NCBI GenBank assembly: GCA_964304625.1
Contig: OZ199839.1
Span: forward strand, 8,075,885-8,139,884
DNA length: 64,000 nucleotides
Direction: 5' to 3'
Source: Kudoa neothunni
Taxonomy: Eukaryota > Animalia > Cnidaria
The notes beneath the pieces were generated by a model. That model worked only from the letters and a program-made list of their open reading frames with translations, searched no databases and was not told the DNA's origin. This document shows positions 1-30,222 of the stretch, one piece after another. The position numbers and the translations under genes were made by a program. How positions within the stretch are numbered: the first letter of the stretch is position 1; every line of letters begins with the position of its first letter.

Positions 1-774
1 TTTATTATTGTTTTCATATGACACAGGAAATTTTTTAATATTCTTAAAACAACGAGGGTTTTTATGTTTTTAGTGGTTCGAGCTTTTCACCATTCATTGA
101 GGCACCTAACAAAATAGTTACTCGCTTCATAGATTGTTCGGTCCCTTTAAACTCCTCTTTGATGAAACTACAAAACCTTTACCTACAAAATAAATCAAAA
201 CGTTAAAAAAACTACATATACCTCTCTGTTGCTGGTAGAATAATTGCAGATTCGTCGATATTATATGTACAATCTGAATTATAATTTTCACATGTCTTTA
301 AGTTGTGGAATCCACTCTTCAACGACTGCAGAATCCACATCTGCGGCTTCGCCATGGAAATTAATTGTTCTTAGGTTTAAATCGCTTTTTAAAACCCTTA
401 AACCACCCAATTGTCCACACTTCTGGCTTCTTATTTTCAACATAAAGCTCAATTCTTTTGTTGATGATATCAGAGGGGGTGATTTCGATTTTTTTATCCC
501 TCATCAAACAGATCAAATCACAAATACCTTGATCATAATTAATGCTTGATACGTTATGAATGTTCTTTCTTTAATTTTATGCTAATCCTCCTTCAATAAT
601 AGAAATCATTTTCTCCTTCTTACGAAGAATCCCATTTAGGGTGGCAATATTCGTAATTTGGAAATGTTTTACTGTTGCTATTTGAGAATGTTTAAAGGGT
701 AAACTTTCGAAATACTTTATTATTTTGAATTTCTCTTCCAAAGTTCTAACAACTTTAGCATTAGTTCTTGCCAT
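1..774 (-). pseudogene. pogo/Tigger-like (CENP-B HTH + DDE_1) transposase, 5' part, frameshifted; runs off window start
   Basis: ORF 577-774 MARTNAKVVRTLEEKFKIIKYFE is a close copy of the + strand transposase starting at 42329. A matching TIR (AATCGGTTACCTACTG followed by TA) lies at 2021-2036. Confidence 0.85.
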
Positions 775-817
775 CTGTATTATTTAATTGATATCAAACA
801 AAAATTTAATCAACGAT

Positions 818-1290
818 TTTTTTTGTTTACAAGGTAAAACCCTTGACGCAACTTGTTAGGTTGAGGAATTCTGGTTGATCAGACCTCTTCCATTAACGCT
901 TTAGGCACCGCAGGACGTAACATGAAACCCCGTCGCTTATCTTTATGCGGTAGTGTGGGACTTTAACCCACAAAACATCCTCGTCTCAGGGCGACCACCA
1001 CCCCAAACCCTATCCCTTTAAGGACGTTGGCTCTGCGGGAACTGCAAATCATTTTGCCTTTCGATGGGTTCCGGAGATTTAAACTCCTATTCACGCTCAC
1101 CCCCACTTCACGCAAATCTGGCTGCCAGTGCATCCCACCCCACAGCGAGCGTACACGTTAATCACAGCTCCCAAATATGGGATAGAGACCCACCGACACG
1201 GAAGCAGTAGTCTGACCACCGGCGGATTCGAATGCATTACCTCAAGGTTCTGAGTCCGAGTGTCACACCAATGTGCTATCTGTCCACGGG
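818..1290 (-). mobile_element. tRNA-derived SINE-like insertion
   Basis: GC-rich island interrupting the Tigger 5' region. The minus-strand head has an A-box-like TAGCACATTGG and a B-box-like ATTCGAATCC (about 1215-1285). It ends in GGGTTTTACCTTG followed by an A-rich tail. Confidence 0.6.
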
Positions 1291-1329
1291 CTCTTCTCCT
1301 TTCTTATATTGGATGAAGACTGCACCAAT

Positions 1330-1837
1330 GTGGATATTAAAATAGAGACAATTAACTCTCGAAAACTCAAATCTTTTTTCCATAAATGATCCCGACAAAT
1401 TTTGATTCGATGTATCAGAAAAAGAATTGGCGATGTTCCTAAATATCCATTAATTTCAAAATTAATGATGAGCTTGCTCTCATTACCTTTCTTCTTCTGC
1501 TTGTTCCGAAAGAATAGTTTTCCAATTGAACATAATCAAAACGAAAAATAGATCATTATTGAAGATCGAAACATTAAACAGCTTGATTTATTCTAAAAGT
1601 TTATTTTATAATAAACTTTGTACAAAATGGAATCTGCCTGAAAATTTAGTAACATCGTTCATAGAGAGAAACCTTTACGACGATAATTGTAATTACACAA
1701 TTTCATTTTATATAAATTAAAAAACATTTTAAATAACTACATTTTTTTTACGTTTTAATCTCTTTTTTGCGGCGATTAACTGTTGATACATTTTACTTGA
1801 TTTCGGTACATTTTTCATAAATCTGCTGACAACCCTG
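1330..1837 (+). mobile_element. hAT transposon 3' remnant
   Basis: Frameshifted LP.SSACSER.FSQLNIIKTKNRS resembles the hAT C-terminal dimerisation motif. Ends in the hAT-like TIR GACAACCCTG. Confidence 0.65.
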
Positions 1838-2079
1838 GCTCGAGGGGACTCAACGGGTCGTGGGCACCTCGAACCCGATTCCTATTTTAGTGCTCACGGC
1901 CCGTCCGCCACTGTATTATTTAATGATATAATTTAAATAAAATGATTGTAGAATAATATCGTTGTATAAATTCGAAGGGACAAAATTTTTCCCTGCAGCG
2001 CTCGCGTGAAAAGTTCGAAAAATCGGTTACCTACTGTAGCACGCTCCCGAGGAAACCCGTAGTTTTCGTGCTAGTATTA

Positions 2080-2436
2080 CATAATTTAATAAAGTTATCA
2101 ATGTCAAAAGAATCACATATATTCTTTTCTTTTTGACTGTATATATGTGAATAGATATATATGGTGTGGAATAAATTTCAGGTCGATTTCCTTCTAATTA
2201 TAAAGAATGTGTCTAATTTCCGTGATATTCCTTTGAATTAATATTCAGGATAATAAAATTATTATCCTTCAAAATATTTGTTAAGATCAATTAATATTTC
2301 CGAAATATTTGTATTGATGTTTCATTGGGTTTAAAGCGAACATTAATTCTGTGTATATATGTATTAATTATAATCCGGTTAAAATTTTGATTTTTATATT
2401 GAACGAAAACTATCGTTATTTCTTTTGCAAAATATA
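2080..2436 (+). promoter_or_regulatory. conserved upstream/promoter region of family A genes
   Basis: About 350 nt of recognisable similarity precedes the ATG of all four A copies (e.g. GATGTTTCATTGGGTTTAA, AAATTTTGATTTTTATATTGAACGAAAACTATCGTT). No function is shown. Confidence 0.45.
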
Positions 2437-5293
2437 ATGAAAGACTCTGTTTACGTTTTAAGAATTTGTACTTATCTGACGTGTATATACACACAAACGG
2501 TCCTGGGAGGTGCTTCAAATCCAACTACTACTGAAACCCCTTTAATTTATAAACTTGTGGAAGAGAGCAATCAATTAAACGTTAATTTTATATTAAATGG
2601 AAATTATTATACTGGGGACAAGAAATGTCATATAAAAAAAGCTGATGATGATGGCACGAAACCTTGTTGAAATTGCTACATGCCCCGGTGATGCTTATAC
2701 AACAGATGGTGAAAAATGTGTTTGGACATGTTCAGGAAGTACCAATAAGCTAGCTTTTGACAAGTTCTCCCCAAAGACTAAATATATCGCTATCTTTAGC
2801 GATAATGACGCAGCGACCGCGGCTTCGAAAAATAATAATGGGATTGTATTTGGATTGGAATTTTGTAACTAAAGGATCTGTGTTCAGTAAATTTCCTTTA
2901 GCATTACTGGTGAATCCGCGAGTTTCAATAACAAGGGAGGGGAAAAAACTGAAATTGAGCACAAAAGCTTGTAACTCGGTGAAATGTCCCATATTTTACA
3001 AGGGCGTGATATATGATGAGGGAACAACTCAGAGAAGTGGCATTGCAAATATTGAAAGTGAAATGGAGTTTAATTTGATGATTCCACATTATGCAATGAA
3101 ATGCGATAATTATCCCAGTTTCTTTTACACCCTGCAAAATAAATACACTCTTTTTAACATAGATGTTTATCAACCACAATATTACGTGACCTCTAGTTCG
3201 AGTGCTCCAACGAAGTATATGCTAAAATTTACAAACAAATTTCCCTTCGAAACGTGTCTTTTCAGTATAAGAGAAGTGCCAACAGCAGGTAGTAACGGTG
3301 GATACACATCGAAATGTGGTTCAGCAGATAAATGTTATGCGCCATGTAATAATGTTGAACTTGAATTCACAGCATCCAAGTCTGTTGTTGAAATATCGAT
3401 TAAAACCAGACACGTACCACTGACCATCAATAACATCCCTTATATTGGGTATATTCAAAAAAAATATGGTAATCCAAAAACATTTTAACTATGATAATCT
3501 TCTTATAGTTGTCATCGAAACTACTGCTCCTACCTTATTGTCAGAGCATTCATCTACTGGTGTTAAGTTAAATGTTCCCTTGTTTCAATCACAAGCTGCT
3601 GTTAAATTTTCTGGATGTACTGTAACTTATTATGAAGCAGACAAACCAAAACCTGCTGACCTTGTTCCTGATGGGGCGAAATGTGGAACTGGTAAAACAG
3701 ACTGTGGCAACGAGTGCACGACTGCTCTAGAAATTACAGGATTGGATAGTGGAAAACCATATATTCTTGAAATTGCAGCTGGTAATAACGCTAGCCCTCT
3801 TCAAGATTTTAAAGAACGTGTATTCTTTCGAACAGGTACTATAATCGAAAAAAATATTCTTTTAAATAAATATATAGCAAAGAAATCTGATCCAACCTTT
3901 TCTGAAACAACTCCAACAGTAACGGATACAACCGCGTCTGTTAAAGCAATAGATGTAACTGGTACAATCACAAAAGACGACAAAACTTGTGCTTACTATA
4001 TAAGCCCTCATAGAAAAGATGTATATGTGTGTGCAATGTGCGAAGATAGTTATCCTTGCAGGGGTTTTTGCAAGGATTCTCAAAAAATTATTGGGTTAAT
4101 GCCTGGAACCGAATATGACCTAAAGGTAGTTGCACATGAGGATTATGGAGAAAAAGAACATAAAATCACAACGAGTATATAAATTGATGAATTCTAATTA
4201 TATAACTAATTATGTTTCAAGCTTTGTCAACGCTCACACTAAAATCGGAATTTATAGACAAAGGCTTTAAGGTGATAGGTGTACTTTCAACACCATATCC
4301 TACGGCTGTTTGTCACTATAAAGTAAACGTAAAAAAAGGGAGTGAATCCGAGTTGGTCTACCAATGCCCACCATTGGCTTCTACAGCAAACACTGGAGCA
4401 ACCTCTAAAGTATCCAAGACTACTAAAATAGCACTAGCTAGGACAACTAATGGACACCAACCACAGAACGTGCCGCCTCCAAATAAAAAACCAGAAATCA
4501 CTCCATGCACACAACCTCCATTGTGCACTGATATTATATTCAAAGAAGGATACGAAGCAGACAAGGAATATGTAGTTTTGGTTACTGCTGTCGGCAGATC
4601 TGCAGAAACTACCATCAAAATACCCATAAGTAATAAAAAATCTAATTCTAAATTCATATCGTTTATATTTTAATTACATTTTTAAAATTATATACATTAA
4701 TTTTTTATTATACTAAACTTTAATTTAGGCCCACAGTCCATCCCCACTAATATCCAATCAAATTAACTGTGGTGTTTACAAGAGAAGGCGAAAACCATAA
4801 AAGTTAAAAACTTCTCTTCCTACAGAGCGTTGATGAGCAGTCGTTATGCAAATGGGAATTGAAAAATTGGGATGATCCATCCAAACCAATCGTCCAAAAA
4901 TGCATGGCAACTGGTGAACAAGGTTGTTCAGCTTTTCCATCATGCAAGGAATTTTCAATTTCAAATGTGGATAACACCAACAATTATCGTTTGATGTTAT
5001 ATCATAGTACAGATAGCAACATCTCTGGTTTTGTCGAATCCAGAAAGGTACTTGAAAAAATGTTACTGGTCATTATTTCTGATAATTTGATTAGATGATG
5101 AATCAAACAAATCCATGTAACATCAAGTTGTTAAATTATAATTGATTTATTTTAGGTCAAAAAAATACAATGTACTTATTGATGGAGATATCTTGTTAAT
5201 CAATTATTTTAGAATTATTGCTGTAGTAGTTCCAGTGCTCATCATTGTTGTTGGTGTGGATTCTATTTCGGATACTGGAAAAATAAAAACTAG
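2437..5293 (+). pseudogene. A1: Cys-rich FN3-like multidomain type I membrane protein, frameshifted as given
   Basis: GT-AG introns at 2865-2901, 3469-3508, 3836-3877, 4175-4221, 4630-4728, 5048-5094, 5117-5155 and 5172-5212. Collinear with intact A3. Carries several 1-nt indels and lacks intron 1; some indels may be sequencing error. Confidence 0.8.
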
Positions 5294-6249
5294 ATTTTTA
5301 TTTATGAAGAATGCTTTCACAAGCTGACGTTCGATTTAGCGACCGTAATTAATATCATAGATATTAATTATCTATTGTATTTCTTCAGCTATAACTTTTA
5401 AAATCTGAATATGTATTTTCATGCATATTTATTATTTCGAAAATTGTTTCTGTCTTTATTCTATATCATTTATTATGGGACAACTAAATCCAATTTTTTC
5501 AATATTCGATTAATTATATTTAAATGTAATAATAAATCTTATTTGTTTAGGTTGTTTTATTTGACAAAAAGTTGAAAATCATTATACCAGTTAAAAGTAC
5601 CCATATTTAATCTTCAAAGTAATTTTTAGATATGTTAAAATATTTATCGTTTTTAAACTAGGCGATACGTTTACAAAGCTGTAATAATTGATGTTATGGA
5701 ACCAACAATTTATGGGCTAACATTAAATCTTTTTTATTGTCATTTAAAATTCAAGTGTTGTATCGAATATTATTTCATGTAGCACACGTGTGTCTTAAAA
5801 TGAGTAAATAGATAAATTTATCAATATGAGCACTCTCAATTGATTTTAAGTTTCTGGATAAATTATCTAGTCCAAGCATTTTTATATTTGGACAAAACTC
5901 TAAAACCTGATTAATAATTAATATTTTATTCATTCAAAATGAGGCTAAATAATTTTATCGCGTATTTTACACAACATGCATAAATCATTTAATACATTAT
6001 CAATATACATTATTAACTTACTTATCTCTTCAAAATTAATCCCATTTAATTTAGGCAGTGGCTATTACCACGCTAGCGTATAATCCCATGTCGAGGCTGT
6101 CAATTGCCACGAAAGCGAATTTCTCCTAATATTTTGATTTCTTAGACCTATAACTTTCATTACCACTTAAACATTTTTTATATTAAATTTTAAATTTTCG
6201 TGTTAAAATTTACCATCTAGATTTTACAATAAAGATCAATCTTTATGCT

Positions 6250-8480
6250 GGGTTTAACAAAAATCTGGGCTAAATTCCAGTCAGTGTCGCCAACCGTGTC
6301 CGATTTCGGACAAATTAGTCAAAATTGTCCAATTTTTTCCATGTCGTATTTTATCCGATTTTTAGTCTTGTTCTTCGAAAGTCTGAATAATCGCAAAACA
6401 AAGTTTCAAAGATTGGAGTTTTTGCAAATTCCCAAAAAATGGAATCTAATCGTTACTGATTTCATGACGAGAAATCTTCGAGTAGAAAATTTTATACTTG
6501 GAACAATGCTTTATTTCGAATTAAAATGCCTGCAATAGATGTTCACCAAACACAAGACACAGTTAAGAATTTTAATAAGTCTTAAAGCCCATGTAATACA
6601 AAATTGAGCTTAGAAAAACATGCCAAAAATTTATCAAAATGAACACATTTTTAAATTTTATGCTCCCGTTAAGACCAATATTTTGGATTTTTTACCATTA
6701 TCATTATTGACGGCAATACACCGTTTTATCATGACCATGAACCATTTTGGAATTATTACGAAGAGATTTTTGTGCTTGAATTTAAAAGACTCATGATGGT
6801 GATATCTAATTGTAAGTTATCATTACAAGTGTTTGTTATCAATTTTCAAAAAATTCCAATTTTAGGTATTACCTAAAAAAATGAAAATTTAACTAAATTT
6901 TAACTACTTGACTAATTTTTCTTAATTTTAATGAATGAATGGTCGCACATAAAAACGAAACCTCATCTGGGTATAGTTGTTACATGAAATTTAAAAGTTG
7001 GACGATAGACTGTAATAGAATTGTTTGAAATTAGAGGAATTTAATAGGTTAAAACAAGGTTTGTTAGACTAAATTATTAATAATCGCCTTTTTAGCCATT
7101 GTTTATCGGCAAATAAATTTTAATTCTATCGGAAAATACCACACATCTTTATTTCCCCATGCTCTGATCAACGCTTCTCCGGAAGCAGCACTTTCTCTTT
7201 TGGAATTATCGAACACATCAGAAGAAATAGAATGTTGTGCTCTACATTAGATAATCTTGTTCTAATGAGGAATTTTTTCAACACATTGACAAAATGATGC
7301 CATAAATTTGAGGTTTCTGAGTTAATTATAAATTAACGTAATATTTATACATATAATTAAATATTAGTTTCGTTTTTACAAAAAATCTGATTTGTCCGAT
7401 TTGCGTTGGCGGCACTGATTTCAGTGACTGCGACACGCTTCGGAGATATTAGTAACTGGTCGTTATATTTGTGGCGCGGCTAATCTTAACAAGAAAATAT
7501 ATACTTTCGTGAACAGTAACGATATCACTAATTTGGATTATGGTTATTTCCACGATGATTTAGATTATACAATAAAGACATTACAAAGTCTTGGATTGAT
7601 ACCAAGTTTTTCTAAATGTTTGTGTGGCGGTCAAAATTTTTTTGCTAAAAGAAAAGATACTGATGATTGATATCAGTATAAATACATTTTATGCAGAAAA
7701 AGATAGATTCAAAAGGGAACAATTTTTGAAATATCTAGACTTCTGTTGCGGAAGATCTTCATATTTATCGTTTCTATAATTCAGCACTCATCCATGACTT
7801 ATGAGGATATTCGAAAATATGTTAGAATATCATCAAATTCCACCATATGTGAATGGAAAAATGTAATATATGATTTTGTGACCTTTAAATTGGATGAGGA
7901 ATCTCCAAAAATTGGCGGACGGGGAGTTATCTTTCAAATTGATGAGACTGTCATATCTAAAAGAAAATACAACATGGAAAGGATTCTTCGTAATCAACAA
8001 TATTGGATGGTTGGTGGTATCGACGAGAATGGAAATTGTTTTTTACGCTTAACACAACCAAGAAATAAAGACATACCTGTAAGAATTATCCTTGACAACG
8101 TCGAAGAAGAGTCGATCATTTGGACGGACGGTTGGAAAGGATATAATAGCTTGACAATGTTGGGTTCTGTGCATGGGTAATTATTCACGGATGGAAGTTC
8201 GTTTCCTCCGAGGGAACACATTCTAATCCAATTAAACCTACTTGGGGAGCTTTTAAGCGTAAATATCGGAGCGCAACAAATAAAAACCCAGAGACTCTTC
8301 CTCACTATGTGGCCGACTTTAAGTATCGAAGAAAATATTCCGGCAAAGAATTATCATCATTATTTAAATATATAATGATTAACAATAATATATTTTAATT
8401 TTTACGATGTTTCTGAAGTTTGTCTATTTTACCCGAAACGAGCCACAGTCATTGTAATTTAGCCAAAATCTGTGACTTAA
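6250..8480 (+). mobile_element. Merlin (IS1595/ISXO2-like DDE) DNA transposon, decayed
   Basis: ORF 7746-8180 has KIGG.G..FQIDET..SKRKYN, WMVGGIDE and SIIWTDGWKGY. The right TIR at about 8432-8480 matches the left TIR (GGCTAAATTCCAGT|GACTGCGACACGCTTCGG) once the 6282-7417 insert is removed. Confidence 0.85.
6282..7417 (+). mobile_element. non-autonomous hAT element nested in the Merlin left TIR
   Basis: TIRs CAGTGTCGCCAAC / GTTGGCGGCACTG. 8-bp TSD ATTCCAGT/ATTTCAGT. Residual RRNRMLCSTLDNLVLMR near 7220. Confidence 0.8.
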
Positions 8481-9484
8481 AAATCTAAAATATCAGTTTA
8501 TTTATATAAAAAATATGGTCGTTTAAATAATTTTTGATTTTATTTTATCACAATTAAATATTTCTAGACTGTTTTGGGTCCTAATTCGATGATCTATCCT
8601 CAAATCGACTTAACTAAATCATATCTATTATAAGTACATAACCTGTATATGCATATATATACATTTTTTTGTTCATTAAAAGAAATCTAGTATCTAAATT
8701 TTTGGATTATGATATTTACCTGACTTTTTAGGGTACTTTAAAACGGATAACTCTAAAAAGGGTATTGGAGTGTTATGAAAATAAACTTACAAAACTTGTA
8801 ATACTTATAATTATGAATTATGTTTATATGTTATATTTAACATTAATGATTATAAATAATAAATAATTTTGCCGCACTTATGTGAATTTTTTTGATATTT
8901 ATAATATGCGAGAATAAGAAATAATATAAGGCAGTGCTGAGAATAATATCTTTTAAGTAGAAAGATTTATCTCGTTTCATCAACTAGAAGATTCTTTAAA
9001 GTCTTACGAAAAAAAATCACTATGTAACTTAATAGATAGAAATAAAAAAATTATTTATATCAAACGTTTTCTCTTCCAAAAAATTTAATGGGGAATTAAA
9101 ACACTGTTATATTTAATACATTTGTTATTTTGGCAACCATTATTGTAATAGAGCAAAGGGTGTAAGAGAGGCTAAAACATTGTGAGGCACCTGCCAGACT
9201 CATTTAGGTAGGAGTCAGTTCCGATGGAAAAAAACTTGAAGTAAAATTTTTACAACTAGCACATAACCACAGGAGAAATCGTGTTTTCTTCAAATGTGCC
9301 GCCACAACGCAAATTACACAGCAATAATAAATTAATATCAGAATTAATTTCTGTTTGCCAATGAAAGAATGCTGCCTGTCTAAAATACAAAAAGCAACGG
9401 GTGTAATAATTACTCTCAAGTCCATACATTACACGGAAAATATATTTTCATAACGTAATGGAATAAACTTTTTCTATAAGATTT

Positions 9485-11600
9485 TAACCCTCCTAAGTCA
9501 CATGAAAATTTATACCTTCCAAGTATAATTGGGGTCCAGAAGACCTCACATTTTTATTTGATAAAATAATAATATGTATTTTAGAAGTTTTTAAAATATT
9601 TGATAGATTATATCTTCGGTAATTTCATAAATGACATCATGTAAATTAACATGATGTAATATTGGTGTACGCATGTGGCAAATGATAAAGAAATATTTTA
9701 ACCACGGGCGTATGTATTACTTTCGAGATCGCATATGTTCTATAAACATAACTCAAAATTCAGCTCATGTAGTAAAATTAATTTTTTATATAATTTTCGC
9801 TTAAAGTGATCAAGAATATCATAATCCCGGCATAGACTATTGCATAAAACAGGTAAACGTAGAAACACAGGAAATTTTTCCTTAGGGCAGAAACGACGCT
9901 TAAAAAATCCACCTAAATATGCCATAGTTCAATCAACATGGAAACAATTACCGGACTGTTTTGTTATCTCAATATTTTCCATACCCAGGGGTCGGCAACC
10001 GATATGGCTGAAAGAGCCAATTATTGATGGTGCGAAAAATTTTTTTACTTCTGGAATCGCACATTCAGTTTAGGATCGAAAATAAAAATATTTAATTTTG
10101 AAATCAGGAATACATAACATTTCAGAAAAATATGGAGAAAAAATCCAATTAGTCAATTTACGCGTTTTTCGATAACTAATTAAACCTATTATTTTTATTA
10201 TTAGTATTTAAATGCAGGGAGAAATAATAAAAAACAAAAAAAGTATACACTTGAAATTTGTCTGATTATTTCAAATAATATTGTATTACGTTTTTGGAAA
10301 TTTCCCATTATGAAGAATTAGATATTTAACCATTGTCGTATATACAACAAATATACCATATAAAATTCACTTTCATGGATGTTATTGTCAAAAAAAAGAA
10401 ATTTCAACCATATAATTTAATCTTTTAAACTTGAAAGAGATACTTTTCTAGTGTATTTTCATGAATTTAGTTATTTTTACGACACGCTATATTGGGTTTT
10501 CTTCGCATTAAAACTAAAGAACGTTCATTATTACAAGAAAATTCTTTGTAATGGATAAAATTTAATGAAAACGTGTATAGCTACATTTTTATGTAAAAAA
10601 GTTGATTAAACAAAATTTTTAAATTGGAAAAACTATCCACACTTTTATGAGTCTAATTTAAAGATTTAAAAAAGTTGTGCATATAAACAAATAAGATTTA
10701 TTTGTATAATATTCGAAAATTTACTTTTAAATAGTTTCACTTTAATAATAACCTTTTTATTAGGGAAAAATGTTTATTAAGGACAAAATAATTTGTTGAT
10801 TTCAAATCATAGATAAAATTAAGAACATTTCGAGTTATTTTGTCTCGTTAATTATTGCATAAGCATAGGACGATGTTCTATGAGGAATTTAATGTTTATA
10901 TGTTATTTATTTTTGTTGAATCTTTCCTTTCTATATCTAACTTTTAAGTTGAAAATTAAGAGAATTAGTTCAAGTTGGTGAAACTGGAGTACCATACAAT
11001 CATTTCAATACTCATATTTTCATTAAAAATGATTTGTCTGATGAAAATTTAAAATTTGAACGCAATAATGAGTTCAACGACTAGGAATTACATAATACCT
11101 TCGCATTTTAACATTAGATATTGTAGTTTATATTATGTACGTAAGGTGGGGAGCCACAGGTTGCCAACCCCTGTTCCATACCATCAAAATGTGAAACTCT
11201 CGTTATATAGAGAAATTTATGTAGTGAGAATAAAGCACGATACATCTTTCCTTCTTCTAATCCAAATATCTCTTTAACCGATTCTCGATTATCCCTGTGA
11301 TATCCCATCAGAAATAAACATCTAATGAAACCCATCCAATTCGATGCATCTATCACCAAAATTTTTCCACCCATGTACTGGTATATTTTAACATAATGGC
11401 GTACATAACAGATCTAAATATTATTCGGAAAGTATAAATTGTATTTGTAATAAAAAAAACGGAAAGACACTAGGACGACTATTCATAATATTTGTAACAC
11501 TTGTTCTGGATGCCAACGACGGGTTCATCGACCATAACATTCAGTTCTTGTGTATTAGTGAGTTAAGTTGTATGTCTGTATCAATATCAAATTTTTCTAA
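9485..11600 (-). mobile_element. highly decayed piggyBac remnant
   Basis: TTAACCCT terminus at about 9484. Minus-strand fragments such as NVMVDE (about 11530) resemble piggyBac transposase. The other end was not found. Confidence 0.45.
9986..11173. mobile_element. non-autonomous hAT-like TIR element
   Basis: TIRs CAGGGGTCGGCAACC / GGTTGCCAACCCCTG, flanked by the direct repeat TTCCATACC. Confidence 0.85.
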
Positions 11601-11629
11601 CGATAAATAATCATGAAAAGAAGAAAATA

Positions 11630-12983
11630 AATTTTACTCTAAATACTCATCTCGTTTCGATGAAACACGTTATGGATGAACAAAATTTGCCCGAAAAACT
11701 AACTATAAAGATTTACTCTAATAAGGTAGTTAGTCATTTTTAATTATAATGAAGGACTAAAATTAAAAATCACATTAAACTTGATTTTTTAAAAATTTGC
11801 AACCCCATGATCCTTTGAAATCTTGGATCAATTTTAACAAATGAAAAAATATGGAATTTTGTAACCGAATATTTTAAACGAATCCAAATAATTCCATTTC
11901 ATTAAAAATTTCCGAAACTAATGAATATTTGTTTATTTACAAAATAAGAATGTGTACCTTCAACGGAAATTTTCTTTACATAAAACTTAAATTAGTTACA
12001 ATTAAATAAGAATAAAATGTTCCATATTTTCCATAGCAAATGTAGAAAACTTTGAGCTAAATTTTTTCAATGCCAATTTATTTGGAGAAACATAGATTAG
12101 GTGAGAAAAGTGTATTTTCATAATAAACTTTATTGATATTAAAGTAGGAAATATTTTATAAGATATTTTATCAGTTAAAATCATATTGTGGAGAAAGTCA
12201 CTCAAATCATTTTTTTTATATTTCGTTTGTATGCAAACTAGGAGATTAATTTTGAAGAGTAAAATAAGTTAATAATGTATATATGATAATGCGTTGAATG
12301 ATTCATGTAGGTTATATAAAGTATGTGATATAATTATTTAATTTCCTTTTGAATGAATAAACAAAATGTTAATTATTAATGAGGTTTTTAAAGTTATCCC
12401 CGAATCTAAAAATGTTTGGAACTAGGGAACTTATCTAGAAACTTAAAAATCAATTGAGAGTGTTCATATTGATAAATAACCTACTTAGTAATTGATGACA
12501 CACATGTACTGCATAAAATATATATTCGATACAATATTTGAATTTTCAATAGTAATAAAAAGATTTTATATCTGCTCATAAACTGTTGGTTCCATTGCAT
12601 CAATTATTGCGCCTTTGTAAACTTATTATCGTCTAATTTAAAAAAGATAAATATTTTGAAATTTCTAAAATTAATTTGGAGATTAAATATATATAATTTT
12701 AACTGGTATAATGATTTTCAACTTCTTGTCAAATAAAACAACCTAAACAAATAAGATTTATTATTAGATGTAAATATAATTATTCGAATATTGAAAAAAT
12801 AATATTAATTTTCTCACATAAAATAAAGAAATACAATTAAAAAAAATATGCGTGAAACTAAATAATTATGTTCCTAATAGTAATGAATGAAGAAATCTAA
12901 TAGATAGCTAAAATTTGTTATTTTATGAATACAATCACCAAATCGAACGGAAATTCGTGAGAGTATTCTTCTAAAATAAAAAT
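11630..12983. repeat. duplicated 3' flank of family A genes
   Basis: Directly similar to about 32750-34120. Its gene-proximal half is similar in inverted orientation to about 5294-6040. Confidence 0.85.
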
Positions 12984-15887
12984 CTAGTTTTTATTTTTCC
13001 AGTATCCGAAATAGAATCCAACGCCAACAACAATGATGAGCGCAGGAACTACTACAGCAATAATTCTAAAATAATTGATTAACAAAATATCTCCATTAAG
13101 AAGTACATTGTATTTTTCGACCTAAAATAAATTAATAAATAAGAATTCAAAATTTTTATTTTACATGGATTTATTTGATTCATCATCTAATCAAAAATGA
13201 GAAATAGCGACCAACAACATTTTTTTCAACTACCTTTCTGGATTTCGACAAAACCAGTGATATTGTTATCCGTACTATGATACAACATTTAAACGGTAAT
13301 TGTTGGTGTTATCCACATTTGAATTGTAAATTCCTTGCATGATGGAAAAACAGAGCAAACCTTGTTCACCAGTTGTCATGCATTCTTGGACGATTGGTTT
13401 GGATGGATCATCCCAATTTTTCAATTCCCATTTGCATAACGACTGTTCATCAACGCCTGTAGGAAGAGAAGTTTTAACTTTTATGTTTTCGCCTTCTCTT
13501 GCAAACACCACAGTTAATTTGATTGGATTATTAGTGGCGGTAGGTTGTGGATCTAAATTAAAATTTAGTATAATAAGAATTAATTTACATATTTTAATGA
13601 TTTAAAAATTTAATTAATTTAGAATTAGATTTTTTATTACTTATGGATATATTGATGGTAGTTTCTGCAGATCTGCCGACAGCAGTAACCAAAACTACAT
13701 ATTCCTTGTCTGCTTCGTATCCTTCTTTGAATATAATATCAGTGCACAATGGAGGTTGTGTGCATGGAGTTATTTCGGTTTTTTTATTTGAAGATGGCAG
13801 ACCTTGAGGTTGTTGTCTATTAGTTGATCTAGATAATCGCTATTTTAGAAGTTTTTGGTGCATTGGAGGATGGGCCAGTGTTAGTTGTTGATGACGGTGG
13901 TGGGCATTGATAGACCCAATTCGGATTCTTGTCCTTTCTTTACTTTTACTTTATATTGACAAACAGCTGTAGGATATGGTGTTGAAAGTACACCTGCCAC
14001 CTTGAGCCTTTTTCTATAAATTCTGATTGTAGTGTGAGCGTTGACAAAGCTTGAAACATAATTAGTTATATAATTCGAGATCAATTTATTTATATACTTG
14101 TTATAATTCGGTGTATCTTATCCCCATATTCCTCATGAGCAATTACCTTTAGGTCATATTCAGTTCTAGGCATTAACCCAATAATTTTTTGAGAATCCTT
14201 ACAAAAAACCCCTGCAAGGATAACTATCTTCGCATACGGCACACACATATACATCCTTTCCATGAGGGCTTATATAGTAAGCACAGGTCTTGTCTTGTGC
14301 GTTAAGTGGTCCAGTATCTGTTATTGCCTTAATTGATGCATTCGTATCCTTCACAATTGGTTTTGTTTCCGAAAAGGTAGAAGTGCCCTTTTTCTCTATT
14401 TATTCATCAAGAAATTTTTTTTCTATTGTGTTACCTGTACGAAAGAATATGTGTTCTTTAAAAACCTTGAAGAGGACTAGCGTCATTGTCTGCGGCAATT
14501 TCAAGAATATATGGTTTCCCATTATCAAGCCCTGTAATCTCCAGAGAAGCAGTACACACGTTGTCACAGTTTGTTTTACCAGTTCCACATTTGCCCTCCA
14601 GGAGTAGTAGATCTAGGTTTGTCTGCCTCAAAATAAGTTACAGTACAAGTAGAAAATTTAGGCTCATTTGTTGGTTGAAACAACTGAACATTTAATCTAA
14701 CACCAGTAGGTGAGTATGTTGACAATAATGGAGTGGCAATAGTTTCTGTGACAACTATGAGAAGGTTATATTTGAATAAATATCCATTAAATACCAAATT
14801 TTTTCTGAATATATCCTTCATACGTGTCTTCACTTTTGGCCAAAGATACATGTCTAGTTTGAATCAATACTTCAACAACGGACTTGGAATCGTCGAAAAT
14901 GAGCTCAACATTATTACAAGGTGCATGACATTTACTTGCTGAACCACACTTTGACTTGTATTCAACACTGTTATCGGCTGTTGACTTATCTCTTATACTG
15001 AAAAGACACATTTCGAAGGAAATTTGTTTGTAAACTTTAACATATACTTCGTTGTATCACTCGAAATAGAGGTCACGTAATATTGTGGTTGATAAATATC
15101 AATGTTTTAATAGAGTATATTTATTTTGCAGTTTGTAAAAGAAGCTAGGATAATTGTCGCATTTCATTTCATAGTGTGGAATCAATCAAATTAAAATCCA
15201 TTTCACTTACAATATTTTCTGTGCAAGCATTTTTAGCTTCTCCTTCCGCATATTTCACGCCCTTGTAAAATATGGGGCATTTCACCGGATTACATGTTTT
15301 TGTACTAAATTTCAGTTTTTTCACATTTTTCTCGATTGTAACCTGTGGGTTAAACCAATAATGCTAAATGAAATTTACTAAAAATATTCGATGCTTTAAT
15401 TACGCCATTCTAATCCAAACATCCAGCCCCCATCTTTATTTTTATTTGCAGCAGTCGCTGCTGAACTATCCGTAAAGACGGCAACATACTTTGTCCTCGG
15501 AGGAAACTTGTCAAAACCAAGATTATGTTCATTTCCTGAGCATGCCCAAACACATTTGCTATTATTTGCATCGTCAACGCGACCAGAGCAATCGTTAATT
15601 TCAACAAGATCCGTGTCTACATCATTAGATTTTTTGATGTGGCAACTTTTCTCCGTAGAATAGTCGCTCCCAGTTAAAATTAAACTTAACTTTAATTGAT
15701 TGCCCTCTTCCACAAGTTTGTAAATTAAAGGGGTTGCAGTAGAGACTGGGTTTGGAGCACCTCCTGGACAGTTTGCGTGTATATAAGTGAAAAGTAGGCT
15801 ATACGTTATTAGTAGCATTCTGTTGTAGTATGTGTATTTACGCAACAGAAAATTACAAATTCCTAAAAGGTAGATAAAGTCTTTCAT
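12984..15887 (-). pseudogene. A2: family A paralogue, frameshifted as given
   Basis: MKDFIYLLGICNFLL signal exon, same exon layout as A3, and TM exon ending GFYFGYWKNKN*. Multiple 1-nt indels split the ORFs. Confidence 0.8.
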
Positions 15888-16439
15888 TATATTTTGGAAA
15901 AGAAATAAACGATAGTTTTCGTTCAATATAAAAATCAAAAATTTGATAGATTATAATTAATATATATACACAGAATGAATGTCGCCTTAAAACCCAATGA
16001 AACATCGATATAAATATTCGGAAATATTAATCCATCTTAATAAATATTCTGAGGGATAGTAATTTATAACCCCTAAAATTAAATTAAAGAATACGATTAA
16101 AATTCGACACATTCTAACCAATATGAAGGAAGTTTAGACTAAATATTATTTCACATCGTAATGCTGATTTAAATATTTATAATAAAAAAGACAAGGGGAT
16201 ATAGGGCTTCCTTGACATTGATAATTTTATAAAATCTTGTGATATTAGGTAAGATTTTAAATATAATTAGATTGTTTTCGTATAAATAAAAATATTTGTT
16301 ATCATTTCTAGAATATAGATTCCATTAAATTATAGATTAACTCAAATGTTAAATGCAACGAAATTTATTTTCTCAAGCAAGAAATAATTTTACTTCTCTT
16401 CAAACGTTACTGATAAACCAATCAAAAACTATACATTAA

Positions 16440-19067
16440 CTCTTTCATGCCAAATGTCCACCCTGGTACCCCACAAATTATACATACCATAAACATGCAT
16501 TTAAATTTATTTAGATGATTTATTGAATTATTACATTTTTTTAAAAGTTAAATGTTTGTTTTCAGTAATGGCCAATTAGGTAAACTAAGAGATCTAGCAT
16601 TTATAATAAGTTAAATAGTAATCCTTACATAAAATCAACAAGGAATACAAAAAATTCAAATTTATACTCATGAGTCGGCTTTTTCTTATCAAGAAAAATT
16701 AAAATTACGAACATTAAAACGTGGTTCAATGCGCTATATTTCATAAGATATTTAGCAACCTATCAAAAGATAATGACCTAATCAACACTTGGGTACTAGG
16801 AAGGACATTTGGCATTCGTGGATCTCCGGCTTTCGAACACATGTATCACAATTTGGTTTTTAAATGTTCAAAAGAGGGAATCATAAAAACTGAAATTGTG
16901 ATATTTCCTGATCCAGAGGAATATGTTGAAGTCTTTGGAACACAGAATCTCGAACGAAGGGTTCTTGAAGCTTACACTGACAATAATCAAGATTCAGACT
17001 GTTCTGATGAGGAAGTTGTACCAATCTTTAACTGTTTAATAAGTGAAACCCTTGGAAATATGCCAAATATTCCGGAGACGGAAGATATTGTTTTTAGTGA
17101 AGTTACCGATCTCGTTTTACCGATAGATTATATCAACTTCTTTTTCAATGAAGACCTAATTCTGTTAATTATTGAAAAAATGAATTTATATTCAGTTCAG
17201 CAAAATTATAATTTTCAAGTTAGTAAAGAAGATATAAAACGTTTATAGGAACGTTGATTATCTTGGGAATTGTCAAAATGCGGAGATGTCGTTGCTATTG
17301 GTCTAAAATTCTGAATTATCCACCTGTTTCTGAGTTTATGTCGAGAACCCGCTTTGAAAATATTTCAAAATATTTACACTTCACTGATAATATGAAAATT
17401 ATCACAAATCCGAATTCTTCAGAATATGATAAATTTGCAAAGATTCGACCGGTTTTAGATTCTATTAGAGCAAATTGTTTGAAAGTTGAATGTTGAAGAA
17501 AGAATTCAATTGACAAGAAAATTATTCCATTCAAAGGTAGGTGTAAATTGAAACAATATGCTCAAAAGAAACCGACGAAATGGGGATTCAAAATGTCCGC
17601 GAGATGTGGAGTTAATAGGCTAATGCATGATTTTTATTTGTACGATGGGGAAAAACCTGATGTGGTTAAAAGTTGTGGTCTAGTATCCGGTGACTTTGTT
17701 AGAAAGTTGTGTGAAAGTTTACCCTTGTCCAAAATTTATTTTGTCTACTTCGACAACTGGTTTATATCCATTCCCCTTCAAATTTTATTAAAACAAAGGA
17801 GCATTTACTCGGTGGGAACCATTTGCAAGAATAAATTAAAGGGATGTCTATTACAGAATGAGACTGATTTAAAAATCCGGGGTCGAGGAGCATTTGAGAG
17901 TGTGCACAACGCTAATGATAATATTTCCATAACACGTTGGTTTGATGGATCTGTTGTAACTCTCTCATCTATTCATTCTTTGATCCAACCGAATAAAATT
18001 GCGAAAAGATTTGACCGCCCAAAAAATCATGAATGACATTCCGTGTCCTGCAGTTGTAGACGAATATAACCAAAATATGGGAGGAGTGGACCCTTCAGAT
18101 ATGTTGATGTCGCTCTACGTAACGAAACATAAATGTAAAAAATATTACATGCGAATTTTCTTCTGGGCTCTCAATACATGTATTATAAATGCGTGATTAT
18201 TACACAAACGAAATTGTAAGATTCAAAAAATTCCTAAGAGAGATAGAGTAGACTTGATGAATTTTTCGTTAATAATAGGCGAAAGTCTTCGTTACTACCA
18301 AATAGCAAGTGCTCCGAAAAAACATGATAGAGTGTCTCTTAATAATTCTTTAGAAAAAATTGATGATAAATATGGAAGATCTAAAATAAGAAAACATCCT
18401 CTCAGTAATCATATTCGAATGGATAACGTAGGGCATTTTCCTGAAATAGTGTGAGTTAAATTCAGATGTAGAATATGCTGTTATATCCTTCGAGATTAAG
18501 CAATAAACATAATTAATTTACCGCTCACTTTGAGGGATTATATAATATATTCTCCTAGTTATCGTATTTTGAGTTTACTCGTGCCTCTTTCTTAGCGTAA
18601 ATTTGCAATTATTTACATATGCCAACGAAAAACTCAATTTAAATGCACTAAATGCTATTCTTTTTGTTGTATTGTGAAAGATAGAAACTGTTTTTTAAAT
18701 TATCATAGTTCAAATATCTAAAGAATTTTCAAATTTATTTTGTTTGTTTTTGTGCGCAGTTTAATGCGCGAAATCGTTGTTTACCACCAATGCCAAATGT
18801 CCACCTCGGTATCCGCGCTAAAAACAGCTGAAATTATACTTTTAATCAATTTATATCTCAATAAAATCATTAAATATAGGATATTGAGTGCTGTAACAAT
18901 ACTACGCGTACATTAAACAGGGAGCGGCGGCTCTGTTGAACCACTAATAACCTATATAGTATTGAGTCATATTGGTGCATTTATTCATTGAGTATCTATT
19001 CGTTATAAGTGCCTGTAATATATTAAAAAAATCGTGAAATGAAATACAAAATTTGGGTACGAAAGGG
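16440..19067 (+). mobile_element. piggyBac transposon, decayed transposase about 16900-18720
   Basis: TTAA on both sides and TIRs CTCTTTCATGCCAAAT / ATTTGGGTACGAAAGGG. Motifs KQYAQKKPTKWGFK, YFDNWF and YNQNMGGVD. An empty site exists in the paralogous flank at about 61724. Confidence 0.92.
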
Positions 19068-19349
19068 TTAAAATATTCATAAACAGGGCCGAGAAAATTT
19101 TGGCTAATATCGCTTTACCAAAGTTTTCGGAGAATCCGATAAAACATTTTAAAGCTGAATATCTGATTAAACCCTGAGGGTTAACAATTTTTTCGACGGA
19201 GATTCATGATGAATTTAAACTATATTTAATTGCTGGTGTTGATATAATAATTAGCACTGCCAACCCAAATCGGACATTCGGCAAAAATTTTTCCGGACAA
19301 AATCTGACCAATCAGAATTTTTTATGAAAATAGAATTAATATTTAATTA

Positions 19350-22300
19350 CAGTCGGGTCTCGGTATTGCGTAATATTTTGGGACCGGGAAAAAATTCCGC
19401 AATATCGAACCACCTGCGCACGCACAGCAACGTTAATTTAACATTTCTTACAAAATAAATCATCTACTTGATATTTTTTATTTATTTATTGATAATTTCG
19501 CATGAGGCATACTTAAATTGATATACAGAAAATAATTTAATAGGATTCTCAATGACTCGTTTTTTCGCGGATTTATAAGATTTTATACTTGAAACGTTGT
19601 AACGATTTCATCATTGTCTATGAGATCAGGATCTTCACTCCAAAAAGTAAATTTACCTTGATCATCTTAATTTAAATGTAAAATTTCGTTTCTTCCAAAA
19701 AATAATATCATAATATATTATTATCTACACATATGAATATTGAAATTTTACTATCAATTACTGCATAATGTTATTTCATCATCACATTACTTTAAAATTT
19801 TGTCTTGCTAGTTTTTAAATAAAAAAGAAGAATAATCAATTATTTTGGTTGGAAAATAGGTGGCTTATTAGTTCAATTATTAATTTTTTAACACTATCCA
19901 TTCCCGAACCAATTTAAACGCATTTAAATATTCAAATAAGGCATATTTAAATATTTTTGGATCTTTCTCTCCGAATAGAACATTTATGCACATTATTTTT
20001 CTCTAATTGGGTGTTAAGCGATGAATTATTCCCAGATCAATTTGCCGCACCACACAAACATTGTTTTTGATAGAAATAGGAGCTGGTTGCTTTCGAAATA
20101 ATCGATAGATTAAGGACGATATGAGAAATGTTCTAATAAAGTTAAAACCTTTCTGTTTTCTTTAATGAATCTCTGGTTCATATATTTGAGGATATGATAA
20201 AATATAGATGAAGATAATAACGCATTCATTTGCGAATGACATTAAACTGAGAGCTCATTATTTCCCCTGAAACAGCGATTATTGTTAAAATTTTCTTATC
20301 ACGTGTAATTGCAATTTTTCTTCGGTCATTGTAGCAGTGATAAACATCGTAGCACGCTTTTGAATTGTTTTACACCCACACATTGTGCTAATTTTTAATA
20401 GTGGACGTACGCTGTATCATCTGTTCATAAAAGTGAACCCCTCTCATCCAAATTTAATATGTATTCCAGATTGTACCTTGACAAAATCTCGGTAAAATCT
20501 CCCATCTATTGATAAATATATTTAACCCTTTAAAGACGCAAAAAAAACTATCCTCATATAACATTAGGGTCAATATGACTCCAGATATTTATTTGGTAAA
20601 TTTTTGAAATTTATCTACCAGCAGATTTTCAAATAAAACGATAATAAATAATCAATTGATCCGCTTTTAGGACAGAAAATTACACATATATAATTTTTAT
20701 AGGAAAAATAAACTCTATAATTATATTCAAAAGAGAATCTAGGTAATAATTAATTCAAACAATTGCAACATTTGTTGGATGAGTGTACTCGGCAGTATGG
20801 TCTATTACAATTCGAACAACGAAGGAACGTTTTCTTATCATTTCCACTAGAACAATAACTACATCATGTTCTTTGGTTTTTTATTTGGGGAATATTTGTA
20901 ATTGGTTCGGGGAAAGGTGATTTTCTTTTAACAACTTTGCTATTATTCAAATTTAGATTGATAAGTGGTTGGTAAAGAGTTTCAGCGATTTCTTTTAGAA
21001 AGGTTCGACGGATTTTATTTTGGCTATTAAAAATATTCTTACTTAATGCCAAAGAATTAATCAAGAATAAGTCGAGAATATTGAAAAAAATTATCATTGG
21101 CCATCTGCGAAGAGAAACTGAGGCAAGCATTCGACCAATGGTGTCGACCTCATCCTTCGCTTTATTGTAGCATATGATCACTTCAAGCTTTTTTTTGTGT
21201 GAGGTATCGAGGATGTTAACATTGGAGGTTCCAGTTGAGATTAAAATGACAGCTTTATTTTTTTATTGACATACGACGTTAGCGTATTTTTCTCAAAAAA
21301 GGCAAAAGTTGCACTATATAATTCCCTTTTTTCGAAGCAAGCACGCAAGTTGGAAGTTCCCTTTTGTTGTGCCGAATAATACCCAAGTATGTCAATTTTG
21401 TTTGTAGCAGCTTTGATGCAAGTGGAAAAAAAGAAAAAAAATTATCAGCCACGATATTTCTTCCTGAATGATGTATTGGTTCAGAGAATGATAGGACGAT
21501 ACCTTCAGCAACATTTAGATTTTGTTCGATATTTTCATTTTTACCCAGGTATGGGGAGATATTTAAAACATACTTTTCGATTGGATTGACAAGTAAAAAA
21601 AATTTTAAGCCATATCTTGCTGATTTCAAAGGCATATATTGCTTAAGGGGACATCTTCCCTTGAATGCAACAAACTGCTCGTCAATTGTGACGTCTTGGT
21701 TTAGGTAGAAACATTTTGGTAGTTTTCTTGTCCATATTTCCCATACTTCACGTATTGGGAAAAATTTATCTGTGATTCTTCTCTCTAGACTAGTTTTTAC
21801 GTCATCAAAATAAACAGATCGTGAATTTGGTAAAATCTTGTCCTTGAAAAAATTGTTCGATAGATTTCTCTACCCTCAGACACACCGAACAATCCTGCCA
21901 TGGGCTCCTCCCGATCTTTATGAACAGAAATAAGGATAAGTACGCCTAAATATCCAATAAACTCCGTGGAGTCAATGTCAGTCCAATTTTCTTTAAAATG
22001 ACTATGCCCAAAAATATTTGTACATTCAATAATTCTTTGACGTATACTTGTAGTGAACATTATGGAAAGACAGTCCAAAATATCACGAACTCTCCGTAAA
22101 CAATAAAATGTCGGACCAGGATGAGAGCTCATGTTTTCAGCTGATGCTTTAGAAACAACAGGTTTGGTTAAGCTCCAGGTGATTCCACTTATATTAGTTG
22201 TAAAGCTATCGGTTTCAACAATTTCCGAAAGTTCATCTGACGATTTTAGAAATTTCAGACAAAACGTCTTCAAACTCGCTTCCTGACGATTCGTATCGCC

Positions 22301-23545
22301 AGTTGACATCTCAACACCACTCATCGTCCCGCGATAAAATTGCGCACAATATTGAGGTTGTTAATATATTACTATAATATAATGTTGAATAAAACAGGAT
22401 CATGGCTTTGTCAAATAATTTAGTATAGTTAAAATGTAATATGAAAAATATTTTCGTATTAACTCTTAAAACAAACACAACACTATTTTGTTAATCCAAC
22501 GGTAATGAGCGAAATGAAGATGAAGTAAACCGATGAAGATTAAATGGGATTAATTAACGTATTTAATATCGTTTTACTCGAAATTCAACCATTAGAATTT
22601 TTTTAATACTTTATCATTGTGATTATAAAAATTTATTACCCTAATTTATCAAATAAAAATCTGGGGTCATATTGACCCCAACATAATTTGAGGACAGTTT
22701 TTTATTAAATTTTCCAGTCATTATTTTTTATCATTTTTCGTTGAAATTACTACTACAAAAATATAGGAGAATAGATGGAATCTTGTGATGTAATGAAGAA
22801 TCCTAACCAAGTTACTGGAGAATTAATCAGGCTTTGGGGTCATATTAACCCCAATGTCTTTAGAGGCGTAAAATCAGCGCTTTCCTTCTCCGTGCAATTT
22901 GAGTTATTCAGACCGTAACGCCTCATGCAATTATTAAACTAACCCTCGCTTCCGTTAAAATCTTTTATTCAATTATCTTTGACAATAATAAAAGATTATT
23001 TGATCATTAAAATGTTAGATAGTAGCTTTTTCTCGCATTGAAACCATCCAATTGTAAAAATAATTTTAATATCTTTATATTTTCCGGGTTTGAATATTTT
23101 GAAATGTTTGAATCTATGGTTTCGTCTTGTTTAGAAAAACTTCTAAAAAGATTTAAATAATCTATTTTAAATTATCGAACAATACTGAAGTAAATATAAT
23201 TTGGTTAACCGAAACGCTTTATAGTAATATCATTGGCGCCACGTATAAACTTATAAAATTTTAGAATTCGATCATTTTTATTATATTCTCTTTAGTTATT
23301 TGAGAACTTACAATGCTTGTTTTAGCGCATCCATCAGACTAAAGGGATTTAAATTAAAAAAAATGAGGTACGCAATAGCGAGACACAAGGTTTTTCCTAA
23401 TTTGTTTGATATCCGCTTGTTCATAGTTTTGTTTTTTTATATAGTTACCCATTTAAGCATACTTAATATGATTATTATGTTTTGTTTAGTGAATTAAAAC
23501 GCATAATGCCAATAAAGCTAAGTTACGCATTATCGGGCACAACTA
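19350..23545 (-). mobile_element. pogo/Tc1-like element, decayed, host of a piggyBac
   Basis: TA-flanked termini CAGTCGGGTCTCGGTATTGCGTAA and TTACGCATTATCGGGCACAACTA. The same end recurs at 30223, 40575 and (diverged) 63910. Confidence 0.65.
20526..22867 (-). mobile_element. piggyBac transposon, decayed
   Basis: TTAA-CCCTTTAAAGAC and a degenerate GTCTTTAGAGGC end, with GGGGTCATATTGACCCC subterminal palindromes. ORFs contain MPLKSARYGLKF, RNIVADNFF, RRWPM and a Cys-rich C-terminus. Confidence 0.9.
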
Positions 23546-24036
23546 TAATTGTATTTATTCCATCCCTATTGTTAATTGAGATATCAAAGTTTTTACTTTT
23601 AGTTAAATTAGTAAATATTTATGAATAAGAAGCATTAAATCTCGAAAATGGACATTGACACGGATCATAATATCCTGGTGGGCATAGTTTTTACTGCATT
23701 AAATGCAGCAGAGTCCAAAAAATAAACTTTATAGGTCAACTGTAGATAGGAGTTGCCATATTGGATTAAAAACTTTCGTGTCAATACCTAATGCCTTACA
23801 TTATGTATATCCACTAAAATAATAGATTAAAAAACCTGAGGTTGAGTTAATGTTGCAATGATTTAAGAACAAAGTTGAAATATTTTGTGATAAAAAAGGT
23901 CTTGTCATTTTTAATAAACATTTTTTGGTCTTGACCACTCGTATTCAATTAACTCAATTCAGCTTTCTAATTAATATTATTAATTTCGTTAATCCTTATT
24001 GAATTTATTATTCATCATCGACGATAGTACAAAATT

Positions 24037-30128: not shown

Positions 30129-30222
30129 ATATCTCTCACTTTTCCATTGGATAAAACATTATTTGAATTTTTAGTTTAATTAGCTAAGAATGAGATTTAC
30201 GTTTTGTTAAAATAATTTTATA

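Follow-up and report, generated by a model that had tools for sequence, protein, structure and literature searches.

In a 64,000-nt stretch of chromosome 2 of the myxozoan Kudoa neothunni (hereafter the window), four paralogous gene copies, A1 to A4, appear to pair in every possible way within positions 5048-5293, and an earlier note attributed this patchwork to repeated short-tract recombination. The question is whether the pairings record such exchanges and, if so, with which partners. Self-comparison of the window delimits the four copies as follows:

2071-6041, plus strand: A1, paralogue of ~4 kb
16439-12244, minus strand: A2, paralogue of ~4 kb
37512-33364, minus strand: A3, paralogue of ~4 kb
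61727-57956, minus strand: A4, paralogue of ~4 kb

These copies belong to a cluster (family A) of at least 15 close copies in both orientations at C2:7.958-8.170 Mb, about 215 kb of chromosome 2. The cluster is internal, ~8 Mb into a 12-Mb chromosome. About five more copies are dispersed in the genome at 80-84% identity, and the clustered copies are 86-92% identical in their 3' part. The comparison set comprised an alignment of 20 genome copies (15 clustered and 5 dispersed). The genome amounts to 40.26 Mb in four contigs, three large ones, with C2 at 12.04 Mb, and a small one carrying COX1 with TGA read through; the published assembly spans 40.2 Mb with an N50 of 12.0 Mb, has introns of ~49 nt and includes a mitochondrial contig of 18.2 kb (PMC12239612). 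The window itself is AT-rich (~30% GC), with introns of ~40-90 nt. A model of A3 built on splice sites common to at least 13 of the 15 clustered copies gives the following gene copies:

2437-5293, plus strand: A1 gene with start and stop codons, its 10 exons placed by projection of the A3 model
12984-15887, minus strand: A2 gene copy
34121-37029, minus strand: A3 gene, 10 exons, 826 aa, the sole intact copy within the window
58260-61180, minus strand: A4 gene copy, frame broken by private indels

The frame of A1 is also broken, by several 1-nt indels and by a 19-nt deletion common to A1 and the clustered copy L036. All 15 clustered copies are full length, each with a start codon and a signal-peptide exon, and the upstream 300 nt are 84% identical across them.

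The modeled A3 product would have a signal peptide, a multi-module FN3-like ectodomain, a TM helix and a six-residue tail, with two juxtamembrane micro-exons (22 and 15 nt) preceding the TM exon. Protein searches used single exons or ORFs as queries, not the joined protein. Two Pfam families scored below threshold, PF00041 with 23.6 bits where 25 are required and PF25059 with 26 of the 39 required. The AF2 model of exon 4 reached a pLDDT of 64, and its best PDB matches, weak ones with E of at least 0.03 and TM-scores of 0.45-0.65, were nearly all FN3 or related cytokine-receptor modules. A comparison with 1.84 billion representative proteins yielded just 24 weak hits at E<=1e-3, the best being short metagenome-assembly fragments with 47-62% identity; an 852-aa match (P0004) proved to be an unrelated tandem-repeat ORF and was discarded. 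By these predicted features, the copies form an orphan family of FN3-like type I membrane proteins, putatively located at the surface and limited to close relatives.

The patchwork lies at the 3' end of A1. Its limits are placed correctly, position 5048 being the first base of intron 7 and position 5293 the last base of the stop codon in the TM exon:

5048-5094, plus strand: intron 7 of A1
5095-5116, plus strand: juxtamembrane micro-exon E8, 22 nt, 96% identity across the cluster
5117-5155, plus strand: intron 8 of A1, 39 nt, class I
5156-5171, plus strand: micro-exon E9 of A1, 16 nt in A1 and 15 nt in other copies
5172-5212, plus strand: intron 9 of A1, 41 nt
5213-5293, plus strand: TM exon E10 of A1, stop codon at 5291-5293, with a private 1-nt deletion near 5257

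The extra nucleotide of E9 is a private A in the A run at 5159-5165. In the four-copy alignment, all three pairings (12|34, 13|24 and 14|23) are present, as had been claimed. The 5' half of intron 7 has the form AAAAAATGTT in A1 and A2 and the form ATTAAATATT in A3 and A4. Intron 8 is identical over 39 nt in A1 and A3, whereas A2 and A4 carry the form GTAAAATAAAA, 43 nt long, which includes a 4-nt indel. In the TM exon, A2 and A3 read CCTGCG...GGCGTT and A1 and A4 read CCAGT...GGTGT. The alignment contains 261 informative sites, split 68/91/102 among the partitions, and these fall into 113 runs compared to 172.8±7.5 expected, a value that none of 10,000 site shuffles reached. Around the patchwork, a 12|34 run spans 4975-5062 (5 sites), a 13|24 run 5121-5160 (8 sites) and a 14|23 run 5192-5326 (5 sites).

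Extending the comparison to the 20 genome copies shows two multi-site haplotype classes in each of the three segments, with all four combinations of intron 7 and intron 8 classes present, also among the copies without indel noise (see below). In the 5' half of intron 7, class I comprises A1, A2, L032, L038, L044 and L045, and class II comprises A3, A4 and others. In intron 8, class I is found in six clustered copies (A1, A3, L031, L032, L035 and L039), and the 43-nt class II in A2, A4 and seven other clustered copies. Since the marker bases of class II also occur in most dispersed copies, this class is probably the ancestral form, and class I probably spread to six clustered copies. The CCTGCG haplotype of the TM exon is shared by A2, A3, L031 and L039. 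The three pairings are therefore a partial view of a larger network, as the window holds four of at least 15 clustered copies; the pairings among A1 to A4 are incidental, and donors or partners are mostly copies outside the window.

Recombination across the cluster was assessed with several tests. For the 15 clustered copies, with 1123 informative sites, the PHI statistic is 0.386 compared to 0.610±0.003 after permutation (z = -70). Restricting the analysis to 11 copies without indel noise yields z-scores of -58 (whole gene), -30 (4000-5560) and -10 (4900-5330). The four-gamete check proposed in the earlier note indicates at least nine recombination events (Rm) within 260 nt at the patchwork among the 15 copies; this density is not above that of the rest of the 3' part, so that no recombination hotspot is seen at 5048-5293. 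The overall Rm is 266, a value to which recurrent mutation in the diverged 5' part has certainly added. Comparing copies pairwise, 75 identical tracts are longer than any found in 300 site permutations for their pair, and identical tracts span up to 212 consecutive polymorphic sites. The 37 strongest tracts have a median span of 158 nt (range 55-643) and join partners 7-178 kb apart, 20 of the 37 linking copies in inverted orientation.

These results bear on one alternative, that parallel mutation or chance at hypermutable AT-rich intron sites created the pairings. The introns are indeed short and AT-rich, and recurrent mutation does contribute to the Rm of 266. Against this, the haplotype classes rest on 4-8 linked differences plus the 4-nt indel, the permutation tests keep the site patterns and still give z-scores of -10 to -70, and recurrent mutation would have to account for identity over as many as 212 successive polymorphic sites. 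We regard the probability of this alternative as close to nil.

Trees inferred along the gene lead to the same picture. Maximum-likelihood trees of four segments conflict, with clades at 93-100% support: A1 groups with L036 (100/100) in 2100-4000 and with L032 (100/100) in 4560-5260. A2 switches its partner from L045 to L044, and A4 from the pair L035 and L038 to L032. In AU tests, each clade is rejected on the data of the other segments, with p-values from 0.0135 down to 8e-63. The genes are mosaics of statistically incongruent segments, and the single consistent tree along the gene that would have spoken against recombination was not recovered.

The partner changes of A1 can be followed in detail along the window:

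1-4011, plus strand: A1 and its upstream flank, ~99% identical to L036
4012-4293, plus strand: patch with 27 substitutions in 280 nt between A1 and L036, the nearest copy being A3 (17 differences)
4587-5322, plus strand: A1 tract nearest to L032, with 12 substitutions to L032 vs 55 to L036
6050-12200, plus strand: intergenic DNA separating A1 from A2, 93-95% identical to and collinear with C2:8032355-8041348

The stretch containing L036 starts at C2:8026294, 49.6 kb upstream of A1, and window positions 1-2070 correspond to C2:8026294-8028367 at 99% identity. A1 and L036 are 99% identical over 2100-4000 and only 94% identical over 4000-5400. The L032-like tract of A1 covers the whole patchwork, and L032 lies 114 kb away. 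Because the flanks are collinear (window 1-2070 and 6050-12200), A1 and L036, as well as A2 and L037, are positional homologues in a segmental duplication. The intergenic identity of 93-95% is the neutral baseline of this duplication. The A1/L036 pair lies above it, with 99% over 4 kb, which makes their exchange younger than the duplication, and the A2/L037 pair lies below it, with 75% in the 5' part and 89% in the 3' part. A haplotig duplication as the origin of the A1/L036 similarity is ruled out by these same values, the neighboring A2 and L037 being only 75-89% identical and the flanks 93-95%.

The other copies show the same behavior. A2 shares long near-identical tracts with L044 (A1 coordinates 3008-3574 and 4022-4242); downstream, its flank matches the L037 flank, upstream it is homologous to the flank of L045, and past A2 the collinearity passes to the inverted flank of L045. 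A2 thus marks the junction of two duplications, an arrangement suggesting that crossovers within genes also rearrange the cluster. A3 has tracts in common with L044, L039 and A1, and A4 with L039, L031, L032 and L033. Some of the tracts differ at 0-1 positions per 100 nt on a background of 10-30%.

Alternatively, the patchwork could be old, inherited by the copies as recombinant structures that a handful of unequal crossovers left while the array expanded, without any ongoing short-tract conversion. Duplication breakpoints inside genes, as seen from the flanks of A2, and the fact that many tracts differ by a few per cent rather than being identical agree with such a history. However, both ends of a tract fall within a single gene, so that each patch implies two exchanges, and a minimum of nine events within 260 nt among 15 copies has to be explained. 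The near-identity of some tracts and the recent exchange between A1 and L036 inside an older duplication also speak against it. We therefore consider an exclusively old patchwork very improbable.

The earlier note had also argued that protein selection cannot be the cause, and this is borne out by the neutral sites. Introns I5-I9 are 86-91% identical within the cluster vs 74-79% for I1-I3, and at 73% identity exon 2 shows no greater conservation than the introns on either side (74% and 79%). Among intact copies, dS is 0.39-0.50 in exons E2-E5, 0.21 in E6 and 0.14 in E7. As introns and synonymous sites are homogenized toward the 3' end, protein selection cannot explain the patchwork. The dN/dS ratio is 0.2-0.7 across exons, with the maximum (0.5-0.7) in E2 and E4, and no exon of the intact copies has a ratio above 1 that would indicate positive selection. 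In the tree of the 3' segment, the clustered copies group together to the exclusion of the dispersed ones, and in the trees of the 5' segments the dispersed copies nest among the clustered ones. Trees and identities thus display the signature of a 3' part evolving in concert within the cluster and of 5' modules keeping old, diverged lineages. No sign of GC-biased conversion was detected, derived W->S changes not being at higher copy number than S->W changes (p = 0.92 in 4000-5560), and the trend in the 5' part is opposite to a GC bias. Rad51-family genes are present in the genome. MutS-family genes are present as well, and loss of mismatch repair was accordingly rejected as the reason for conversion between diverged copies.

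Taken together, the runs of informative sites, the PHI and four-gamete tests, the identical tracts, the segment trees, the AU tests and the neutral sites support the reading as repeated short-tract recombination. The explanation is very probably pervasive interlocus (non-allelic) gene conversion within an orphan type I membrane-protein family of at least 15 copies. The data demonstrate the mosaic structure, the incongruence, the involvement of neutral sites and the 5'-3' polarity; the repair mechanism, the non-reciprocity and direction of transfer, and any benefit to the parasite are inferred from one haploid assembly. In the proposed course, a double-strand break in one copy would be repaired by homologous recombination with another copy as the template. 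Each repair would copy ~50-650 nt, occasionally several kb, from exons and introns alike, and repeated events with different partners would produce mosaic genes with a new nearest relative every few hundred bases; now and then, a crossover inside a gene would rearrange the cluster. In this reading conversion is more effective at the 3' end (the stalk, the micro-exons and the TM exon), where it is either more frequent or better tolerated; that end is thereby homogenized within the cluster, and the 5' ectodomain modules retain diverged lineages.

Such a conclusion depends on the quality of the assembly, which hifiasm-meta produced from HiFi reads of Thunnus albacares at a k-mer coverage of ~7 and for which very few parasite RNA reads are reported (PMC12239612). 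Read evidence was sought for window positions 3800-5600 at 99% likeness, a threshold that leaves out unitigs with a 1-nt indel. Logan unitigs of one run (X1), 61-86 nt long and thus too short to link the three segments, match A1 exactly in 21 of 30 bins. One of them (3988-4065) crosses the junction at ~4012 exactly, with a sequence present only in A1 among the 20 copies. Another (5091-5164) continues as if the A run of E9 had six A's, not seven. Three raw runs (one of RNA) filed under the same species label contain no parasite reads at 99% likeness, since the label is probably that of the host, and the relation between unitig depth and copy number is too noisy for use.

Possible signs of consensus error are uneven among the copies. 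In A1, A2, A4, L039 and L049, private 1-nt indels are as numerous as private substitutions, and ten other clustered copies have almost none; elsewhere in the window, the neutral ratio of 1-nt indels to substitutions is 0.02-0.06. Eight of the nine private 1-nt indels of A1 fall inside its L032-like tract. The density of 1-nt indels is ~0.1% before 4557 and 0.5-1.2% from 4587 through the intergenic DNA and A2, the noise in A1 thus starting at ~4590, where its nearest relative switches from L036 to L032. This excess looks more like stretches of low-quality consensus (e.g. single-read support at 7x) than like pseudogene decay, and the private 1-nt indels of A1, A2 and A4 may be consensus errors.

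Could hifiasm-meta have joined or over-corrected paralogue reads, so that some mosaics are not real molecules? The low HiFi coverage and the coincidence of the indel rise at 4587 with the partner switch of A1 are compatible with such an artefact, as is the A-run length implied by the 5091-5164 unitig. Between the L032-like tract and L032 itself there are 12 substitutions and 9 indel columns and, outside a 105-nt sub-patch, 3 substitutions vs 8 single-base indels. However, patches of 50-650 nt are far below the length of a HiFi read, and the donors, often inverted and as much as 178 kb away, have non-collinear surroundings, leaving no read overlaps through which they could be joined. The window is free of N gaps, the unitig seen only in A1 among the 20 copies spans the ~4012 junction without mismatch, and the same signal is present in 11 copies without indel noise (PHI z = -58). 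Random consensus errors, moreover, cannot yield substitutions common to other copies. An artefact as the general cause is therefore improbable, and a local assembly join is conceivable at the ~4590 junction of A1 only. Since random indel errors create no shared substitutions and the noise-free copies agree, the conclusion of pervasive gene conversion stands.

The process at work is ordinary interlocus gene conversion, well known in itself, in an undescribed surface-protein family of a myxozoan. In the literature searched, no report of paralogue gene conversion was found for this family or for myxozoans, and the terms "fibronectin" and "gene conversion" between paralogues are absent from PMC12239612 and bioRxiv 10.64898/2026.02.11.705288; the process is textbook, and within that scope the family and the animal group are new for it. 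Myxozoans are economically important fish parasites whose host interface is almost without a molecular picture. With a variable distal part on a homogenized membrane-proximal part, and as a lineage-limited, surface-type family evolving by conversion between paralogues, family A is a candidate for host interaction or immune evasion. It is possible, though rather doubtful, that the cluster acts as a working diversity generator in which conversion reshuffles FN3-like ectodomain modules on a homogenized stalk and TM anchor, with some copies perhaps silent. If so, Kudoa could vary its surface repertoire to evade immunity or recognize host cells, and the antigenic variation that serology has reported in other myxozoans would have a molecular basis. 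For annotation and phylogeny, the lesson is that a tree of these genes varies with the segment chosen and that the low-coverage assembly may contain frame errors.

Interlocus gene conversion and concerted evolution in clustered families have been described for Caenorhabditis paralogues (PMC3966223) and teleost duplicates (PMC10503786). The Kudoa cluster seems to resemble those cases in its short non-allelic tracts, its partner switching, the homogenization of introns and synonymous sites, and the dependence on sequence identity and proximity. It seems to depart from them in being an undescribed myxozoan orphan family with at least 15 partners, in tracts between copies that are 10-25% diverged, in its strong 5'-3' polarity and in that half of the strongest tracts join inverted copies.

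Mosaics of surface antigens produced by ectopic recombination are known from the var genes of Plasmodium, the VSG genes of Trypanosoma and the MSG genes of Pneumocystis. Like these, family A is a large clustered family in a parasite, with a signal peptide and a TM segment, with chimeric genes drawing on multiple donors and with a distal ectodomain that varies above a conserved membrane-proximal part; unlike these, its cluster is not near a chromosome end and gives no sign of a single expression site. In chicken Ig V genes, Borrelia vlsE and Anaplasma msp2, diversification is templated by pseudogene donors. The likeness here lies in short tracts copied into an intact gene, A3 sharing tracts with the frame-broken A1, L039 and L044. 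However, the Kudoa "pseudogenes" are full length and retain a signal-peptide exon and a conserved upstream region; consensus errors may account for their frame breaks, and copying goes in every direction. A single expression site fed by donors without promoter or 5' end does not describe this cluster, in which 15 of 15 copies are full length and which is chromosome-internal.

Closest in lineage are the VSP-like and other lineage-specific surface families of Sphaerospora molnari, which have been proposed to serve antigenic variation (bioRxiv 10.64898/2026.02.11.705288). The predicted Kudoa architecture is one of FN3-like modules, not of CXXC-rich VSPs, but like the S. molnari families it would be a myxozoan lineage-specific set of cysteine-bearing type I surface proteins and a candidate for immune evasion.

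Segmental duplications of the cluster break within family-A genes, and the A2 gene itself forms a junction, with one flank homologous to that of L037 and the other to that of L045, both being further family-A copies of the same cluster. Two such duplications involve the window and the chromosome-2 contig of the assembly (G000:C2):

1-12200, segmental duplication with G000:C2:8026294-8041348
16440-24000, inverted segmental duplication with C2:8154534-8166541

At 2483-2490 of A1, and at the equivalent site of L036, a family-A copy upstream of the window, most of intron 1 is absent and both copies share the loss of 19 nt where exon 2 begins, so that the first splice acceptor is missing in each. 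This lesion was copied together with the tract of 99% identity.

Dispersed repeats that recur dozens of times across the genome make up the flanks of the A genes, and the intervals between the genes hold transposase remnants, one ISXO2-like (a weak, sub-threshold match), two piggyBac-like (DDE_Tnp_1_7) and one pogo-like (DDE_1):

7746-8180, 17548-18036, 21797-22324 and 42904-43302, transposase remnants

Family B, a second repeated unit, occurs twice in opposite orientations, the two being 91% identical with very few indels:

27562-30216 and 48819-46164, family B, inverted pair

Single-base indels are dense (0.5-1.2%), with few private substitutions, in two stretches of the window:

4587-16400, 3' part of A1, A1-A2 intergenic DNA and A2
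57956-61727, A4

A3 and the repeats at 27.5-30.2 and 46.2-48.8 kb are free of this excess. Because the excess may reflect consensus error in low-coverage HiFi data, it is doubtful whether A1, A2 and A4 are really 'pseudogenes'.

The small fourth contig of the assembly carries COX1 (G000:C4:2716-3945) with eight in-frame TGA codons; it is therefore the mitochondrial genome, whose code reads TGA as sense.

The large protein search returned an 852-aa ORF (P0004, locus L051, ENA contig ctg142351) with an E-value of 1.5e-18 to the query, which proved to be a false lead: it consists of a unit of about 60 residues repeated perfectly in tandem and is unrelated to the family.

Exon 4 encodes an FN3-like module present in all copies:

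35889-35569, minus strand, exon 4 of A3

In every copy, four invariant cysteines frame hypervariable stretches that lie between conserved strands, and the dN/dS of this exon (0.6-0.7) is, jointly with that of exon 2, the highest.
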